Assembly (NCBI GenBank): GCA_021613535.1
Contig: CP075497.1
Span: 7,378,001-7,442,000, forward strand
Direction of reading: 5' to 3'
DNA: 64,000 nt
Source: Adineta vaga
Taxonomy: Eukaryota; Animalia; Rotifera
The translations under genes were made by a program, and so were the position numbers. Shown here in pieces: positions 9,417 through 20,884 of this stretch. The first letter of the stretch is position 1. The number at the start of each line of letters is the position of its first letter. Below the pieces are notes generated by a model. The model was not told the origin of the DNA. It did not search any database and was given only the letters and a program-made list of their open reading frames with translations.

Positions 9417-10403
9417 TGAACAGTAAATTTAAAATTTGCACTGATACAAACAGCATGTTCATGTCGAACGAACGAAAGATACGAATGATCATGAATAAAA
9501 CTGAAAGAAATAGAATTTCGAATGCACACGTGTTTTTACGAAGGATTGAACTAAGAAATACAATTAAGAAACAAAAATGCACATGTTATTATTAAGGAAG
9601 AACGTTTCTACTATAAACTTTATCCCTCGATTTTATGACCAGTATAAATCACAACTTTAACCTTGAAATATAGTTGAATATTCAAATGTAAATATCAAAT
9701 CAGAAAGCATCTGTATGTTTATGAAAGGATACTATTTCATATCACTGTTTTCGTGATGATACTTATTCTAATATCAGTAATGGAAAAACTAAATTCTATG
9801 TAAGAAAAGATTTACATTTGTAATTTGATGCTTTATTTTTTAATGACAATATGTCCGTTTTCTTAAAATGCACTTTATCATTTATTAAGACGGTGCGACG
9901 TTAGGAGCATCGTATTATTGAGTTTCTTTGCGTCTTTTTATTCTTTTTACTATTTCTAACGCGATGATCTAGAAAACTGAATGTTGCTCAACTGTCACAC
10001 AAACGTTATCGAGAAGTTCGGGTATTGAATATGATATATCTTTCGTTCGATTTTCTATACGTATTCGGTTTGTCAAAAATAAAACACAAGTGCTAAGTGC
10101 CTGACAATTAGCTGAAAAAAGAATTAATCGACACAGCGACATCGTTTATTTCATTGAAGTTCATAAGTATTCGCAGAGATTCTCAACTTTGTCGCATGTA
10201 TTTCGCAATCGAGCTATGCTCGAATGCCTCTCTAGTTGAAAGAAAATAGTCATGCATCGACCATTCGATCGCTTATTTTTTAGTATATTTTTATTTTGTA
10301 TTTCGTTCGTTTTTTATTGATTGTAAAGTGCTATTTAACGAGCCACAGTTACCGAATAATATATATATATATATATATAGGTACTCGTCATTGGTGTTTC
10401 AAC

Positions 10404-11567
10404 ATGCCATCATTAAAAGTAATAGTGTCTGACGAAAAAGAAAACGAAGATGATCTAGAACGTGTATGTACTCCGGATGAACCATTAATTTTCCTTCCAT
10501 CAGCAATATCAACAGTTAGTATTACTGATCGGCCTGTGGAAAAAGGTCATGTATCGGAAAAATTCAATCGATGTACTCAATTTTCTGGTGCTTTCTATAC
10601 ATTATTAGGATCATTTCTCTTTACATGTACAGCTTTTTCGATTAAACAATTAGGTGTCGATCTACTTGATGCATTACTTTTACGTTTTGTTATTCAAACT
10701 TTAATCACATTTTCATATGTACGTTATAAACAATATCCAATATTCTTTGGTAATCGTACTCAAATATTTCTACAATTTCTTTGTTGTGCAACAGGGGCAG
10801 CAGGACTTTACTTATGCTTTATTGCTATACGTTATGTTGAATTATCTGATGTAACAACACTAAGTTATACACGTGTAGTATGGACGGTGGTTTTTAGTAT
10901 ATTTATTTATCGAGAAAGACCATCATGGAGTACATTAGTAGCTTTACCAATAACACTTCTCGGTGTTGTTTTTGTTGCTCAACCAAGTTTTCTTTTCTCA
11001 TCAACAGTATCTTCTATGAATGGTAAACTTCGTATACTTGGTTTAAGTTTATCAATGTTGAGTTCGTTTACGGCTACAACAAATGTTTTAACATTCAAAA
11101 AATTAGTTTGTACTTCGAAAGATATTAAACCAAGTGTTATTAATTTTCAATATTGTGTTGCTGTTCTTATTTCGTTACTGATCAATCAATTCTATAAAAC
11201 ATTTATTCTTCATACTGGTCTTACATTAAATTTCATACTTTCATGGCGATATATTCTAGCATCATTGGTTTGTTTAATTATGATTTTAGTGAATATTATA
11301 ACACAAAAAGCAATGAAACGCGAACACCCAGCAATATTTTCACTTCTTGGTTCAGCTGATATTATTTTTTCTTTAATTCTTCAAAATATTTTTACTTCAA
11401 AACATTCAAATTTATTTGCTTTACTTGGTTCAACATTAGTCATTTTTAGTGTAGTCATTATTGGCATGGCAAAAATTCTCAACGAAAATTCTGCACATAA
11501 AAAGATCAAATTAGTTAATAATGATCTAACTATGAAAGATTTCGAAGAAAAGATTGGCAAATGTTAA
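10404..11567 (+). CDS. SLC35G-type EamA/DMT transporter
   Basis: About 10 TM segments with LLLRFVIQ, YVELSDVTTLSYTRVVWTVVFSIFIYRE and LLGVVFVAQPSFLF, typical of SLC35G1/TMEM20. ATG at 10404 follows an acceptor near 10380. Confidence 0.85.
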   Translation: MPSLKVIVSDEKENEDDLERVCTPDEPLIFLPSAISTVSITDRPVEKGHVSEKFNRCTQFSGAFYTLLGSFLFTCTAFSIKQLGVDLLDALLLRFVIQTLITFSYVRYKQYPIFFGNRTQIFLQFLCCATGAAGLYLCFIAIRYVELSDVTTLSYTRVVWTVVFSIFIYRERPSWSTLVALPITLLGVVFVAQPSFLFSSTVSSMNGKLRILGLSLSMLSSFTATTNVLTFKKLVCTSKDIKPSVINFQYCVAVLISLLINQFYKTFILHTGLTLNFILSWRYILASLVCLIMILVNIITQKAMKREHPAIFSLLGSADIIFSLILQNIFTSKHSNLFALLGSTLVIFSVVIIGMAKILNENSAHKKIKLVNNDLTMKDFEEKIGKC

Positions 11568-11910: not shown

Positions 11911-14244
11911 TCAATCCGATTCATAAAATGAAATAGCATTTTCAACAAAATAATCAGATATACGTCTACGCATAGCATCGACATCTTGTCCAAAACCAAC
12001 TAATGTTAGTTGATTTTGTTTGACTTGTAAAAGTACACGTCGTCGTCGAAAACCACCTGGATTAGAATAAAGTTCACGTACATATGCATGCCACGATTCA
12101 CTTGCTAGACAACGTTTATCATCTTTGTCTAACATTATCGAACGAACACGTATATCATGACGAAGTATGTCATAGACACGATCACACCCATCACGTGTTA
12201 AACCATATAAAACGAGTTTATGATGAGTATTGATTGACGATGACGAATTATGATTGGGTATTTGTCCAAGACTATTCACATTCGGTGTTGGAGATACTGC
12301 ACTTCGTCGATGATTATTACTAATTCGTTCAATCTCATAAGCACATACATGATCCGTATTAGTTAAATAGGAAATTATTACTCCGACTAAATAAAATAAA
12401 AAGAAGATTGACAGTAACTTGTTCATTTTGTTTTTACTTTGAAAATTCACTTACCAGTATCAGGATTCGATAAGAACACTGCCATTTCTTTGCCTATACT
12501 ATAATGTTTATGAACAATTCCATTAAGAATTGATTCGAAATAATTTTTACAAACAGCGACTTGATCAGGTGGACCACGTAGATGAACACGTCGTCCAACT
12601 CGATCAATATCAATCGTTAAATCCATATAAGTTCGTCGAGCTAGATCAACAAAACGCATTGATAATAAATCAAGTTGATATAAACGTAATTTATCAATAT
12701 GATCATCAATTGTTACATTTGATAATGGTGGTGGTAATTCAATATCAGGTGTACTTTGTGTTAATGGTGATGAACGAAGTAATAGCGATGATCGTTGATT
12801 ATTGACTTTGGGATCACGTGTTGTACTCACTGGTTTACTACGATAGACAGCATCATTTAAAGGTATATTATTATTTGAAGTATGTGTTGTTCGTGGTCCA
12901 GAAAGCATATCGGTTAGTTCATTTAAAGCTCGATCAAGATGTTCTTTCAATGCTGTTACAACAATATGATTGGGTTGACCTTCTGCTGGAGTTAATTGCA
13001 TTAAACGAGTATTATCTTTCAATGAAAGATCAGCTAGTTGTTCTTGACCAATCGCAGGAATTTTATTATTATTCCACGGTACTTTTTGTATAGCCAAACG
13101 TTCCGTAAGAAAATGTTCAACTAATTTTTCGACATCTTTTGTCCATTGAAAACGTTGTTTCACTGTTGAACGTGGGCCATTAAAGATGATTTCTAAGAAT
13201 CCTTCAGTTTGTAAACTAACAAAACCATTTAATGGTTTCAATTGTTCGCGAAGTTCATTAAGTAATGGACGATTTTTAAGTAAAAATAAATAGCGACTAT
13301 CATCACATATACGATAACGAATCGGATCAGGTTGTTTACCTACATTTGATGCATCTGTAAATGGTTCGATACCCATATGTTTATAATAAATACGGACATC
13401 GAGTCGATGACCATGTATCAAATGTTCACGTTTTGTTACTCGACGTACATCTTAAATATATGAAAGAGAAAAAAAAATTGATTTAGTAAAAAACGAAATG
13501 ATTCGTCAAGAAAATGTTTTCATTAAGAAACCTTTGTGATCAGAAAATGTGACAAGTGCATGTTGATGTTCAGCGTCCAATGTGACATCAATAACTCGTC
13601 CACCATCACTACGACGTCGATTGGAAAAATACAATTCAAGTACATCACGCGATACATCCGATGGTAAATTTCGTATCATTACAGTTGCTGGTGGAGTGAC
13701 TTCTGCTAATGAAATCTCTGATTCATGTAATTTTGAACGAGTTGAATGGCGACGACGTACTTCTGCCATATCTGAATAAATAATAGTATTAAGATCATTA
13801 AGAGAGAAAAAAAATGAATATTCTTATTCAAAACTAACCAAGTTCAGTTTTAAATGTAACCATTACAGTTGTATCATCAAGATTAGAATAATCAATACGT
13901 TCTATTTCTGCTTCACCTGACAAATGTTCGATATAAAGTTCAAGATATTCACGAATAAGATCAATAGGTACGTTAAATAAAATTAAACGACGAAAATCGA
14001 CATCGTTTGAACGTGGTAAAGATAAAGAATTATTTATTTTTGAACTTTTAAATGGTGGTACACTTGGTCCAAATACTGTTGCATCAATAGAATTAATTGA
14101 TTGAGGACTATTCATGGCTGAATATTGAGGTATTAACAGTGATGATGATGAAGATGTTGATAATGACGGAACAGTTGGATATTGATGATACGGTGGAGGA
14201 TAACGCGTTTGTATTGGTGGTGGTGGGGACACTTGCTGCATCAT
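11911..14244 (-). CDS. PARP14/PARP10 N-terminal-like RRM + KH-like protein without catalytic domain
   Basis: Two RRM/NID-type repeats (EYLELYIEHLSGEAEIERI; DVLELYFSNRRRSDGGRVIDV...ALVTF), then KH-like units (VHLRGPPDQVAVCK; LTLVGFGQDVDAMRRRI). Four exons; stop at 11911. Confidence 0.6.
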
Positions 14245-14818
14245 GACGAGCTAAAATGTATCAAATGAAAGTAAAAAGAAAGAGACGTTGTACTACACGT
14301 ATGTGTTTTTTTCCTCCATATCGACTATAGATGAAGATGAAAAAGAAAAGGGGACGTATATTCTTTCTCTCTCCTTCTCTTACAGTGAACAACGAAAACG
14401 GATGCACACAATCTATGAACCGTGTCGCAACAACGCATCTCAACATAGTTGACTCTCGTCTGCCTACTCTTTCGTTTCATTTTTTTTTCTTGTACATAAA
14501 AAAAAAATGACGCGTCTTGTAAAAGAAACCGATCGCTCGACTGGCCTGGCAAATGTACATCCACCTACATATGCCTACCTATCTGATTGATAATTGGAGG
14601 ACATCGACGAGAATATTCATTATCATGACACGTTTGAGTGACAATATCCATTTTGTATCAATCAAAGACACATCAATCTAATCAATATAGATAGTTGTAC
14701 ATTTTTACATCTGAATGTGTACGTTAAATGCCTATTAATTGATTCAAGGTAATAACATGGCAATTAAATGTATATATTTTTCGCTCTTCTATGAACTCAA
14801 TTTGATGTTTTCCTTTAA

Positions 14819-15688
14819 TTAAAATAAATTAATTAAAAACACAATTAATAGAAAAATAACCACTATAAAAACGAACAATTTTGTTATTTTATTATGTCTC
14901 GTACGATTTCGATATGTTTGTAAATCAACAATTCGACGTGTTAAATCTCGTCTATCTTTTGATCCATTATAACCACATTCATTCGGAGGATAAATCAGTC
15001 GTATTTTTCCACTATCTCCATCATCTGTTATAGCAACAAATTTTTCATTACGTAATGAAGTATATTTACCAATTGGATAATCACCATGTGCACATCCATT
15101 TGATTCGATATCATATCTTTCTAATAACTGTTCCGCACGATCAACATAATCGAGATATCGATCTAGTGGAATTTCATCCTTTTCAGTTAAATCATGCATT
15201 GCATAGATATCGTTCGACGATGATAAAGTCCAATCAATCATTTCTATCGGTTTATATGAATCTTGACATGAATAGAGCATTGTTTGCTTGGGTTTCAAAA
15301 GCGTATTTTCATAGAGAAGTATATAAACAGTAATTTCTCTTCCGCGCATATGGTCCGGCCATACATTTTCATAATCTTTCCAATGATCAGGATATCGAGC
15401 CTTTAAACCCACGGGTAATTTCATATCAAAATACAATTCTGAAAGTAGATTAAACGCAAGAGGGATATCACGTGGTCGAATTGAAAAATGAACTTTCCAG
15501 TCAGCTGTTATATGTTCACTAGTCGCTTGTGCTAGCCAATAACGTCGGGCAGTAAGAGTAAACAAGCGAACAAATGAATTCGATGCACCTAAATAATAGT
15601 CTGATCGATGAAGCATTCGATTTTCTTCTAATAATCGTGTATAATCAAAGTAGAATTCTTCTTGCATTGTTTCGTTATCCTGTTTCAT
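14819..15688 (-). CDS. Putative phosphothreonine lyase (OspF/SpvC/HopAI1; LanL-lyase fold), intronless, C-terminal TM anchor
   Basis: Motifs WKVHFSI, PLAFNLLSEL, GLKA, GREITVY, GCAHGDY and KYTSLRNE occur in the same order and similar spacing as SpvC DKFHISV, PQAFQALSGL, KWKV, GAQFTLY, QCPESDV and KYLSYRNE (SpvC recalled from memory). Confidence 0.75.
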   Translation of the reverse strand: MKQDNETMQEEFYFDYTRLLEENRMLHRSDYYLGASNSFVRLFTLTARRYWLAQATSEHITADWKVHFSIRPRDIPLAFNLLSELYFDMKLPVGLKARYPDHWKDYENVWPDHMRGREITVYILLYENTLLKPKQTMLYSCQDSYKPIEMIDWTLSSSNDIYAMHDLTEKDEIPLDRYLDYVDRAEQLLERYDIESNGCAHGDYPIGKYTSLRNEKFVAITDDGDSGKIRLIYPPNECGYNGSKDRRDLTRRIVDLQTYRNRTRHNKITKLFVFIVVIFLLIVFLINLF

Positions 15689-15836
15689 TTTTTTCCGTCA
15701 ATGATACGTAGATTTCGGTTTGTTTTATTATTTCATTTCTTTTCTCTTTTCTTTTATTTATGCCAAGAACAAAAAAACGTAACAATGATGAGTCAACAAT
15801 GACACACAGAACAAAATTTTTCTTTTTTTCTCTCTT

Positions 15837-18800
15837 CTATTCATCCGAATCATCGAACTTAATTGAAAACGTGTTCACTGAATCGATTTTTCCACCATGA
15901 TATGAACCACGTTTCTTTTTCGTTTTCTCATGGCGAAAACTTTTGCCACGAGTATTGATTAAATCAGCATTCGCTTTCTCACCCCATGAGCCACGTGCAC
16001 CAGCCTATTTAAATGCCGAAAGTATTATAAACAAAAGTTTCAAGATCATGCTTACTTTTTGATCGAAAGCGTTTTTACCAATTTTTTTCAAATATTCTGG
16101 ATCAGCGTCTTCTTCTCGAACACGTCGAAAGGGTGATGTTTTACGCTAAAAAATTAAGAAAATACAAATTTCTATTTGAGGATATCGATGAATCATTCGA
16201 CATACCTTTTGTCTATTATTTTCTTCTGCAACAGTCACCTAAATAAATATTTATCATTCGAATACAGATAAATAAAAAGTAGATCAAAACTAACATCATT
16301 CGTGTGAACGTTTTTCATTGGTTTTTCATCGTCTGAGTCAGCACTTGATGATGACGATGCTTTACGTTTCGTACTACCATTTCCATTAATTGTTGTTATA
16401 GATGATTTATTGAGACCTGCACCTGAAGGAAAAAGTAAATGACCTCAATTTAGGGAAGCAATCAAAATTAATTGTACATACCATTGACGGCAGGTTTTTG
16501 CAGTGATTTATTATTGATTTTTGGTTTATCATCGTCTGAATCACTGCTACTGCTACTACTTGATGCCACAGGTTTCTTGTTAGTTGAGAGATTCACGGAT
16601 TGTACCGTTGGTTTAGTGAGAGTAGCAGACTTTTTTGTTGTTGGACTATTACCCTCATCTGACTCAGAATCACTACTACTTGATGGTGCAGCTTTTTTGA
16701 CCGCTTGTTGAGTAGGTTTAGCAGGAGTTGTTGTTTTGGCTGGTACAACTGATGTTTTCTTACTTTTATCATCATCAGATGAATCAGATGATGATGAATC
16801 TTTTTTCTTATTATTATTGAGCTTAACAGATGATGGCACTGTAGTTTTGGGTGCAACTAGAACATGAAATAGTAGATATATAGAAGAGGAAAAAACCATA
16901 TGTAACTACTTTTAGTTGGTGTTGATGGAGGTTGTTTTTTATTTGCAGTTGGTGCAACATCATCTGAATCTGAACTTGAACTACTGGATGAAGGTGCCTT
17001 GCGTTTGATTGGTTGAGCAGAATTTGTAACAGTTGGTTTGCTTGGTTTTTTCTTTGTGTCTTCATCAGAAGAGTCTGATGAAGATGATGTATCTTGTTTT
17101 TTCTTATTTGCTTGAACAGCAGGCTTGGCGATCGATGCAGTGACAGGTGTTTTAACTGTTGAAGTTTGTTGAACTGTTTTTTTCTGAGCAGACTTATCAT
17201 CATCTGAATCACTGCTACTACTTGAACTAGCAGTCTTTTTTACTATCGGTGCTGATTTAATAGTTGTAACTGGTTTCTTCTTGTCATCATCGGATGAAGC
17301 AGAATCTGAAGATGATGTATCTTTCTTCTTGTTATTTGTTACAGCAGATTTCTTGACGACTGGTGTTACAACAGCTGTGATAGACACATACAATTCGTTA
17401 TTCAACTAAAATTTCACAAATCAATCTTACCAGGTTTTGTTGAAGCTGCTTTTTTTGTCGTAGTGTCATCATCTGAATCACTACTACTACTACTCGATGG
17501 AGCAGGTCGCTTAGCCGAAGGAACAATTGGTGTGGATGTTAATATTGGTTTCACAGCTGCTGCTGCTGCTGCTACAGTCGGTTTCTTCTTAGTCTTTTCA
17601 TCTTCACTTGATGTATCACTACTATCAGATGAACTTGCCTTCTTTTTATTCACCACTGCTGCTGTACTTTTCGCCACTGGTGTTGTTGTTGCTACTACAA
17701 ATCCAAAAGAAACTATCATACTTGATCATCAAAGATTTCTACTACCTTTGGCAACAACTGGTTTCGATTTTACATCATCATCGGAGTCAGAATCACTACT
17801 GCTTGACGGTGCTGCTTTCTTGACTGGTTGTGGAACAGTTTTAGCAGCTGGTGTTGATGCTGGTGCTTTTTTCTGTGTACTAGCGTCGTCTGATGAACTC
17901 GAATCGGATGAACTATCTTTCTTCTTGGTTGTTGTCAAACTAGCTGGTGGTGGTATCGCAGCTTTTGGTATAACTGAAATGATGGTAGAGATATTACATT
18001 CTTGTCAATCAGTTGAAACAAGATTGATATACCTTTCGAAACTAATTGTGTTTTCTTCTGTGGTTGATTGTCATCGTCTGAATCAGAATCACTACTACTT
18101 GATGGTGCAGCTTTTTTGACCGGTTGTTGAGATGGTTTAGTAGTAGGTACTGATTTGACGGGTGTTTGTTTTTTGATCTTGTTCGTATCATCGTCAGATG
18201 AATCAGAATCTGAAGATGAATCTTTTTTCTTGTTACTTGTTTTGCTAGCTGGTGGTGGTACATTAGCTAAAGAAAGACGAGTGAATATAAGTGATGTATG
18301 ATAAATATCCAATCATATACCTTTTGAGACTATTGGTGCTTTATTTGTAGGTTTTTTATCATCATCTGAATCACTGCTGCTACTCGAAGAAGCAGCTTTC
18401 TTGGCCACTGGTTGAGATGGTTTAGCAACTGTTGTTGGTTTAACTGGTGCTTTTTTCTGAGCATCATCATCTGATGAATCAGTATCAGAAGATGAATCTT
18501 TCTTTTTAGCAGTAGCTACAGTTGCTGGTGGTGGTACAGCAGCTCTTTTTATAGGTGAAGTTGTAACTATGATAAAGCAAAGATACTCAAAGAGTTCATT
18601 TGAATGATGTTTTTATGTACCTTTTTTGACAGTAGAAGTCTTATCATCTGAATCACTACTACTCGAGCTACTTGATGCCTTCGCTTGGATCTTTGGAACA
18701 ACAGCAGCTGGTTTAACTGCCAAGGTTGGTTTCTTTTTATTATCATCTGACGAATCAGATGATGATGATGATGATGAATCTTGTTTCTTCTTGTTGGCAG

Positions 18801-20884
18801 CATTTATTGGTGTTGTTGGAACTAAATGTTCGCATAAAGTATATTTTACAGAAAATTTAAACTAATACCTTTCGCAGCTGTTACAGTTGATTGTTTCTTA
18901 TTTATTGCTGGTTTAACATCAGAATCACTACTGCTAGAACTGCTAGATTTGCTTGATTTCTTTGCAACAACTGGATTCACTTTAACTGGTTTTTTGTCTG
19001 TACTATCATCTGAAGAATCTGAATCCGATGATTCTTTTGTTTTTTTATTAACCAAAGTAGATGATGGTGTTACAGCATTCTTCTTCACTGGTGTTGTAGG
19101 AACAGCAGCTATAACATGAAATACTATGATTTAAACTTAAATTTGATAAATATATACCTGGAACTTTCACTTGTTTCTTATTGTCATCCGAATCACTGCT
19201 ACTGCTACTACTTGACGCTGCTGGTTTCTTTGCTGAAATAGGAGCAGCACTTTTTGGTTTAACTGAGACTGCTATAACTGGTTTTTTAACATTGTCATCT
19301 GACGAATCCGAATCAGACGAAGAAGATTTAGCTGCCTTTTGATTCTTATTCACTGTAGCGCCTATCGGTTTTACGGTTGATGTTGTTGCTAGTGCTGAAA
19401 AAATAGATAGCAACGAAATTCATTCGCATCATTGAACATTTGATCGTTACTTTTAAGTGGACTCTTTTTTGTCGCAGGTGATGTTTCTTCTTCGGAATCA
19501 CTGCTGCTTGAACTGCTAACCTTTTTGATTGTTGATGGAGTTACATTACTTTTCGCTGCCGCTGGTGTAGTTTGGACTTTTTTCTTATTATCATCTGATG
19601 AATCAGAATCTGAAGACGATGTATCCTTCTTCTTATTGTTGGTTACAGCAGGCTTTTTCGCGACTGGTGTGGATGTTAATGCTACAGTCGGTTTCTTCTT
19701 AGTCTTTTCATCTTCACTTGATGTATCACTACTATCAGATGAACTTGCCTTCTTTTTATTCACCACTGCTGGTGTACTTTTCGCCACTGGTGTTGCTGTT
19801 GCTACTACAAATCCAAAAGAAACTATCATACTTGATCATCAAAGATTTGTACTACCTTTGGCAACAACTGGCTTCGCTTTTGCATCATCATCGGAGTCAG
19901 AATCACTACTGCTTGACGGTGCTGCTTTCTTGACTGGCTGTGGAACAGTTTTAGCAGCTGGTGTTGATGCTGGTGCTTTTTTCTGTGTACTAGCGTCGTC
20001 TGATGAACTCGAATCGGATGAACTATCTTTCTTCTTGGTTGTTGTCAAACTAGCTGGTGGTGGTATCGCAGCTTTTGGTATAACTGAAATGATGGTAGAG
20101 ATATTACATTCTTGTCAATCAGTTGAAACAAGATTGATATACCTTTCGAGACTAATTGTGTTTTCTTCTGTGGTTGATTGTCATCGTCTGAATCAGAATC
20201 ACTACTACTTGATGGTGCAGCTTTTTTGACCGGTTGTTGAGATGGTTTAGTAGTAGGTGCTGATTTGACGGGTGTTTGTTTTTTGTTCTGGTTTGTATCA
20301 TCGTCAGATGAATCAGAATCTGAAGATGAATCTTTTTTCTTGTTACTTGTTTTGCTAGCTGGTGGTGGTGGTATCGCCGCCTTCTTAACAACTGATGCTC
20401 CGTTAACTATAAGAATAAGTGAATTCAGTAAGAAAAGAGATAGAAAATTGATTATCACCTTTGGTTGGTGTTGATGGAGGTTGTTTCTTATTAGCAGGTG
20501 GTGCAACATCATCTGAGTCTGAACTTGAGCTACTTGATGCTGCTGCTTTTCGTTTCAAATCAACTTTGACTGGTTGAACAGTTGGAGTAGTTTTTGAATT
20601 TGTCGATGGTTTCTTGGTATCTTCATCAGAGGAATCCGACGAAGATGATGAATCTTGTTTTTTCTTATTTCCATTTGTAAATGGAACAGCCTTTGGTGCC
20701 GAAATTGGGACCTTTTTTTGAACTTGAGTAGAAACTAAATTATCATTTGTCAATATCCTTATCAAAGTACAAAGAAATATTTCTTACTTCCTTTCTTTAT
20801 TGGTTGATCATCATCGGAATCATCACTGCTAGATGATTGCCTTGATGGAACTGTTTTTGTTTGTGAATCAGCAAGTTTAACCAT
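15837..20884 (-). CDS. NOLC1: Nucleolar and coiled-body phosphoprotein Nopp140 (SRP40 C-terminal domain), many exons
   Basis: Alternating SSSDSDSDD acidic and K/P/A/T basic repeats. C-terminal SPFRRVRE...[37 protein letters not shown]...SIKFDDSDE* is SRP40_C. Confidence 0.93.
17571..20369. repeat. Intragenic duplication in NOLC1: about 17571-18259 repeated at about 19681-20369 (offset 2110), introns included
   Basis: Near-identical ORF pairs 17608/19718 and 17729/19839. Intron sequences are near-identical, e.g. caaatccaaaagaaactatcatacttgatcatcaaagattt. Confidence 0.92.

Follow-up and report, generated by a model that had tools for sequence, protein, structure and literature searches.

A predicted tail-anchored phospho-Ser/Thr lyase of a mostly protist family in bdelloid rotifers

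[quoted passage not shown] The pathogen enzymes are the type III-secreted phosphothreonine lyases OspF, SpvC, VirA and HopAI1 (PF03536, VRP3). In SpvC, K136 acts as the base and H106 as the acid, while K104 and Y158 stabilize the carbanion; the phosphate is held by R148, R213 and R220, and the phosphotyrosine is bound by F100, K134 and K160 (PMC4159009). The antibiotic enzymes include the LanKC and LanL lyase domains (PF25816). Of these, the class IV enzyme VenL requires W50, K51, H53, K80, K103, D137 and R149; it can do without its counterpart of R220, and only classes III and IV have W50 and K103 (PMC8341899). In the class V lyase LanY (PF17914, with HopA1), the K104/H106 pair is absent (PMC9486802). 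A eukaryotic lyase, BLES03/C11orf68, was proposed earlier by computation (PMC4159009). Papers from 2026 still state phosphate-elimination chemistry to be bacterial.

We analysed a window of 64,000 nucleotides from the bdelloid rotifer Adineta vaga (contig CP075497.1, positions 7,378,001 to 7,442,000). On its minus strand, as for the features of the ORF and the two flanking genes given below, lies an ORF with a phospho-Ser/Thr lyase fold (14819–15688), which runs from ATG to TAA without introns and encodes 289 residues with a predicted C-terminal tail anchor. The original prediction had described an intronless 289-residue frame among intron-rich metazoan genes, and the neighbours are indeed spliced genes of metazoan type.

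Homology to OspF/SpvC and to the LanL-type lyase fold, also claimed in that prediction, was borne out by the profile and fold comparisons that follow. Searches with the single protein sequence gave no match in Pfam or, using phmmer, in the PDB; the homology is therefore visible only by profile and fold. A family profile matched only SpvC, VirA and OspF in the PDB at E < 0.001 (E 1.8e-8 to 2e-4), with LanKC next at E 0.16. According to hhalign, the probability of the match was 96.2% for SpvC (E 2.2e-9) and 93.8% for the lyase domain of a Streptomyces LanL, the sequence of which was taken from a plasmid. The AlphaFold model (pLDDT 94, pTM 0.90) retrieved SpvC, VirA and OspF at Foldseek ranks 1–10 (E 1e-5 to 4e-4; probability 1.0 and TM by target 0.51–0.58 for the SpvC/OspF group), followed by LanKC/LanL. 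VIA, a comparison free of Foldseek, superimposed the model on SpvC with a Z of 12.7 and 3.2 Å over 167 residues, and then on ThurKC (Z 11.5), CuvL (10.9), SalKC (9.7), HopA1 (9.4) and LxmKY (9.1); a gap separated these lyases from the first unrelated fold at Z 6.8. Matches in the ESM Atlas were unnamed clusters followed by OspF, with scores at the level of leads. A search of the A. vaga genome with the PF03536 profile gave no match, and neither did its control. Profile matches to a mast cell protease and a Legionella phytase were dismissed as chance, having E > 0.3 and being absent from the fold searches. Overall, homology of the rotifer protein to the OspF/SpvC–LanKC/LanL lyase superfamily is hardly in doubt.

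Residue conservation was counted in 205 aligned homologues, whose identity to the query reaches down to ~25%. The W64-K65-x-H67 motif (15488–15499) provides the predicted carbonyl-polarizing lysine and general-acid histidine and corresponds to K104/H106 of SpvC and W50/K51/H53 of VenL; K65 and H67 are each conserved in 183 of 185 sequences and W64 in 175 of 181. The predicted general base, K96 (15401–15403; SpvC K136, VenL K80), is located on strand 94–98 of the model, is conserved in 189 of 195 sequences and aligns on K136 in a structure-free multiple alignment. In the segment G116-R117-E118-x-T120-x-Y122 (15323–15343), Y122 (192/193) occupies the position of SpvC Y158, and R117 (196/198) that of the phosphate-binding lysine of LanL (VenL K103); G116 is conserved in 196 of 196. 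The hhalign alignment likewise places R117, five residues N-terminal of Y122, on K111 of Streptomyces LanL. G202-D203 (15080–15085) contains the predicted aspartate partner of the catalytic histidine (D203, 180/181; SpvC D201, VenL D137), and S211-x-R213-N214-E215 (15044–15058) is an SpvC-like motif with a predicted phosphate-binding arginine (R213, 180/185; SpvC R213, VenL R149). With the numbering of K104, H106, K136, R148, Y158, D201, R213 and R220 confirmed on the SpvC sequence, hhalign set K65, H67, Y122, D203 and R213 on K104, H106, Y158, D201 and R213. The positions and catalytic assignments originally given for K65, H67, K96, Y122, D203 and R213-N214-E215 agree with these alignments, and in the predicted model the active-site residues are found on strands of the sheet.

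The residues required in VenL all have counterparts in the rotifer protein, namely W64, K65, H67, K96, R117 (Lys to Arg), D203 and R213, and the family alignment varies least at these columns. Of the SpvC arginine triad only R213 is retained, and R117 aligns to A153 of SpvC. The absence of exact R148 and R220 equivalents, noted in the original prediction, was thus upheld; since W64 and R117 match LanL-specific residues, the absence is explained and represents no defect. As read from the alignments, the active site has every element of the LanL arrangement, and the motif around R213 is SpvC-like. The insert that had been predicted after Y122 is also present (15173–15322). It is variable in length, its long form being common to the clade that contains Heterolobosea: the Y-to-D spacing is 80–84 residues in bdelloids, 89–101 in the rest of this clade, mostly 46–76 elsewhere and 43 in SpvC. 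A family-specific conserved motif, Y233-P-P-N ... N241 (14966–14992), was found to have no SpvC counterpart; Y233 is conserved in 170 of 179 sequences, P234 in 180 of 182 and N241 in 175 of 180. Q54, D63, E118 and E215 are further invariant residues of the family.

Like OspF and SpvC, the rotifer protein is a stand-alone single domain, with counterparts of K104, H106, K136, Y158, D201 and R213 and a common Y-x-S-x-R-N-E motif. By contrast, its identity to SpvC is at most 20%, it lacks the D-motif, the phosphotyrosine pocket, R148 and R220, and it adds W64, R117, the long insert, the YPPN motif and the tail anchor. Moreover, it is encoded by a chromosomal animal gene without a docking motif, whereas the effectors are secreted by bacteria. 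With the LanKC/LanL domains it has in common the fold (Z 9.7–11.5), the W-K-x-H motif, a basic residue five before the tyrosine (VenL K103, here R117) and the lack of the dispensable second arginine. It differs from them in having arginine for lysine, an SpvC-like C-terminal motif and a membrane anchor, and in being a stand-alone protein of 289 residues without a fused kinase or cyclase. Neither a kinase nor a LanC domain was found in the long family members, and no precursor peptide gene was seen near the rotifer gene. HopA1 and LanY have the fold (Z 9.1–9.4), the base lysine and the tyrosine in common with the rotifer protein; the K104/H106 pair, missing from LanY, is retained in the rotifer family. 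Against PF03536 the query itself was unmatched, the best relative reached 24.5 bits versus a cut-off of 25 bits, and 25 of 89 members matched weakly; the best RamC_N scores were about 19–21 bits versus a cut-off of 27. The scores lie below both Pfam cut-offs, and the docking motif, phosphotyrosine pocket, kinase and cyclase are all missing; the protein, though predicted to work like the OspF and LanL lyases, belongs to neither family. BLES03 is also a eukaryotic protein with a loosely similar core and a computed proposal of phosphate elimination. Nevertheless, it reached a Z of only 5.5, has a different connectivity and lacks the catalytic histidine, whereas the rotifer family is a homologue recognizable from sequence and has the full residue set. 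An identity with BLES03 was rejected, as it ranked 44th in VIA, behind the bacterial lyases, and gave no match in the family-profile searches of the PDB.

Residues 271–289 (14822–14878), which follow a basic stretch, are predicted from hydropathy and the model to be a transmembrane helix serving as a tail anchor. The Kyte-Doolittle mean over 17 residues is 3.39, two residues lie behind the helix, and the AlphaFold model has a helix at 256–288. In general, tail-anchored proteins have a strongly hydrophobic last helix with few residues after it, no signal peptide and a cytosolic domain. This anatomy, and the lack of a signal peptide, predict a cytosolic catalytic domain, and the substrates are therefore probably phosphoproteins, of rotifer or microbial origin, at a membrane. 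A C-terminal transmembrane tail occurs in 97 of 234 homologues (about 40%), including those of Naegleria and Willaertia (Heterolobosea), Mastigella and Pelomyxa (Archamoebae) and Anaeramoeba. The original prediction was right about a C-terminal transmembrane segment, at least as a predicted helix, but not about its addition by the animal: an anchor invented in rotifers was rejected because protist members already carry the tail. No hydrophobic tail is present in the Didymodactylos orthologue (P0037, 272 residues, L031:5228-6046) or in one metagenomic bdelloid-type copy (P0034), reflecting either true loss or a faulty gene model.

From what is known of SpvC and VenL, R117, R213 and K65 would hold the phosphate of a phosphoserine or phosphothreonine within a polypeptide, and K65 and Y122 would polarize the backbone carbonyl. 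K96 would take the alpha-proton, and H67, backed by D203, would protonate the leaving oxygen. Loss of the phosphate would yield dehydroalanine or dehydrobutyrine, closed to re-phosphorylation. The sequence of the tail further suggests that the anchor would fix the enzyme, facing the cytosol, to a membrane (probably that of the ER or secretory pathway) and may replace a docking motif as the route to substrates. In the rotifer protein, F100, K134 and K160 of the SpvC phosphotyrosine pocket correspond to T61, G94 and L124, and the short, acidic N-terminus offers no basic MAPK docking motif, as had been predicted. The absence of both pocket and docking motif makes the MAPK pT-x-pY sequence a doubtful substrate, and the substrates are probably not MAPK pT-x-pY loops. 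On this analysis, beta-elimination acting on phosphopeptides is the probable activity.

The same fold and site could alternatively serve another chemistry or substrate, such as a phosphodiester adduct of Ser/Thr (nucleotide, ADP-ribose or phospho-headgroup), a small or membrane-linked phospho-compound, or the binding of phosphosites only. The invariant family-specific residues beyond the lyase set may indicate another substrate class, and the lost phosphotyrosine pocket, the membrane anchor in about 40% of members and the occurrence of non-lyases such as eIF4E among the VIA relatives at low Z are consistent with this possibility. Against it, the elimination residues of VenL and the catalytic core of SpvC are all retained, and the characterized close fold relatives (the OspF family, LanKC/L and LanY) are all pSer/pThr lyases (PMC9486802). 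As for binding only, the base and the acid are both invariant, which better fits catalysis. We consider a different chemistry or substrate unlikely.

An exhaustive search of 1.84 billion representatives gave 180 matches at E ≤ 0.001. Over some 180–200 homologues of 25–80% identity, hardly any variation occurs at K65, H67, K96, Y122, D203 and R213. Members are spread over at least six major eukaryotic lineages: they were found in Heterolobosea (Naegleria fowleri, Willaertia, Acrasis), Amoebozoa (Pelomyxa, Mastigella, Nematostelium, Protostelium), dinoflagellates (Amphidinium, Symbiodinium, Effrenium), metamonads (Paratrimastix, Anaeramoeba) and choanoflagellates (Didymoeca, Salpingoeca), as well as in Lotharella, the cryptophyte Rhodomonas and the nucleariid Lithocolla. 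Among the matches, no named animals other than bdelloids and no vertebrate member were seen. Since most homologues were drawn from metagenomes without labels, the gene may also be present in other animals; the contigs of those unnamed close relatives that were looked up are gene-dense, with eukaryotic genes around the family member. Among 185,579 prokaryotic (GTDB) species scanned by pattern, only two MAGs had members, one of them with eukaryote-like genes nearby; metagenomes added a third bacterial one. No further full member turned up when 401 and 301 genomes around the two bacterial MAGs were sampled, and 301 Pseudomonadota searched for LanKC lyases yielded one weak match. In a tree with bacterial outgroups, the family members grouped together (SH-aLRT 98), and a long branch set them off from SpvC/OspF and LanL; because of the long branches in the tree, the root of the superfamily is unreliable. 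By its sequences, this is apparently an undescribed family of predicted eukaryotic pSer/pThr lyases; none of this kind is described in the searchable literature, which has subscription journals largely outside its scope.

Several further occurrences of the domain were observed. An uncultured gammaproteobacterium (G001) carries two near-identical full members 51 kb apart (L006:4902-5621 and L007), without a membrane tail and amid LRR, RCC1-like and small-GTPase-like genes, as in amoeba-associated bacteria. A giant-virus MAG contig holds one intact family member (L009:4836-5678). A fusion of the lyase domain to DUF1810 (PF08837), seen in Rhodomonas and related sequences (P0136, P0245, P0267), may hint at the function. 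Distant and diverse lyase-fold proteins (L016, L017, L023-L028, L033-L047) occur in bacteria with small genomes of 1.6–3.3 Mb (G001, G003-G005, G007, G185, G330 and others); they share the W-K-x-H motif, most have K or R in the position of R117, and they are present in 5 of 6 genomes of the order of G001 and 13 of 401 of its class. Together they appear to form a group of stand-alone lyases not described before.

Because a eukaryote encodes a complete active site, the idea of a native eukaryotic eliminylase can now be put to the test using a single recombinant protein and an already published peptide-library assay. If true, it would be a third kind of phospho-eraser in eukaryotic signalling, a natural source of the dehydro-residues handled by LanC-like (LanCL) enzymes, and a source of new tool enzymes. 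LanCL enzymes add glutathione to dehydro-residues (PMC9934072), and A. vaga has LanC-like loci on two contigs (G000:C5:9503595-9504750 and G000:C2:10940057-10940675); a functional link between these proteins and the rotifer lyase is conjecture. As no vertebrate member was seen, human dehydro-residues would stay unexplained by the family. It is possible, though we advance it tentatively, that phosphate elimination is a native and ancient eukaryotic modification: endogenous phospholyases, often tail-anchored, would write dehydroalanine and dehydrobutyrine into their hosts' own proteins across protists, would have disappeared from the majority of animals, fungi and plants, and would have been regained by bdelloids, whose LanCL-type enzymes could cap the products with glutathione.

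To place the rotifer copy, a 58-row IQ-TREE phylogeny was built, excluding fragments and redundant rows above 72% identity and dropping alignment columns filled in fewer than half of the rows. The bdelloid sequences grouped together (support 100/97), nested in a clade of 19 rows (100/98) to which Naegleria, Willaertia and unnamed eukaryotes also belong; the long insert after Y122 is common to the bdelloids and the Naegleria/Willaertia clade. Candidates for the immediate sister of the bdelloids, which the tree does not separate, include a sequence from a eukaryote (P0049). AU tests, for which the groups were picked after the first tree had been seen, gave p 5e-5 for a union of the bdelloids with the Didymoeca group, p 0.007 with the Salpingoeca group and p 0.028 with the bacterial pair; each union was rejected. 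Gene transfer from a protist to bdelloids is likely; on the tree, the simplest reading is that it preceded the split of the sampled bdelloid lineages, from a donor that was probably amoeba-like and related to Heterolobosea, and with the anchor included. The relatives being mostly protist and the bdelloids nesting with Naegleria and Willaertia, such a transfer is likelier than the domestication of a bacterial effector. The explanation as a whole, that of a stand-alone phospho-Ser/Thr lyase of a mostly protist family, protist-derived in bdelloids, is one that we favour with moderate confidence.

An active lyase might also have reached bdelloids by vertical descent, the family dating from early eukaryotes and the bdelloids having kept a paralogue lost from other animals, fungi and plants. 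The breadth of the family, which includes choanoflagellates and a nucleariid, would fit such a history; resolution deep in the tree is poor, and the placement of both Amoebozoa and choanoflagellates in two positions each suggests old paralogy. However, many independent losses would be required, no named animal outside the bdelloids is among the matches, and the union with either choanoflagellate group was rejected. In addition, the gene is intronless while its neighbours are spliced, and bdelloids are known for frequent gene uptake (PMC4632278). Vertical descent is accordingly quite improbable.

A captured bacterial OspF/SpvC effector that gained an anchor and erases the phosphothreonine of MAPK activation loops is less probable again. 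In the PDB, profile and fold searches both rank SpvC and OspF first, and the few bacteria with true members make a bacterial or viral carrier conceivable. Nevertheless, SpvC and OspF fall far outside the family, the pattern scan matched just 2 of the 185,579 GTDB species, the bdelloids did not group with the bacterial pair in the AU test, the anchor is common to protists, and the SpvC pocket residues and basic docking motif are missing. This origin is largely refuted and, in our estimation, very unlikely. Of the horizontal acquisition and domestication originally proposed, a foreign origin thus remains probable, while a bacterial effector as its source does not, protists being the nearest relatives.

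Within the chromosome, the ORF lies between the 3' end of a Nopp140-like gene (SRP40_C; 15855–16133) upstream and a spliced PARP14-like RRM gene (11911–14244) downstream, both of which served as context and synteny markers. The order Nopp140-like, lyase-fold gene, PARP14-like RRM, EamA is conserved in Rotaria sordida and Adineta steineri, and orthologues of 56–80% identity were identified in these two species and in Didymodactylos carnosus. A DNA contig from an independent run bridges the ORF and Nopp140, confirming the linkage to this flanking gene, on which the original prediction depended in part. Pairwise dN/dS values among four bdelloids, obtained by simple counting, were 0.25–0.32; the gene is under purifying selection. 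The checks of synteny and selection in other bdelloids thus came out in favour of a real gene. The GC3 of the gene is 0.19, versus 0.16 for its EamA neighbour.

RNA contigs from three runs, taken to be RNA because neighbouring genes appear spliced in them, cover 14847–15713 without splicing and leave 14554–14781 empty. RNA depth over the ORF is low, the contigs give neither strand nor starts, and the Nopp140 RNA contig ends near the start codon of the ORF. The gene appears to be transcribed, and the signal could include read-through from Nopp140. The gene is single-copy in the A. vaga genome (100.8 Mb, six contigs), in which no paralogue was found, the homoeologous segment included. This collinear segment, on contig 3, lacks both the lyase-fold gene and Nopp140, itself single-copy, and so reads as one two-gene loss. 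A contaminant or non-functional relic, for which the single copy, its absence from the homoeologous segment and the low RNA depth might speak, was rejected on synteny and selection and has a negligible probability, given the chromosome-scale contig, the DNA contig spanning into Nopp140, the gene order kept in two further species, the intact frame with a dN/dS of about 0.3 and the joint absence of Nopp140 from the homoeologue. The ORF is a real gene residing in bdelloid chromosomes.

Other samples of the species carry the variants G224E and S156L (window positions 15018 and 15222), which fall in variable loops away from conserved residues. The Nopp140-like gene (15763–20800) contains a near-identical internal duplication (~17460–18310 versus 19520–20510). 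The EamA transporter gene (10296–11567) is intronless, has about ten relatives in the genome and is possibly foreign as well.
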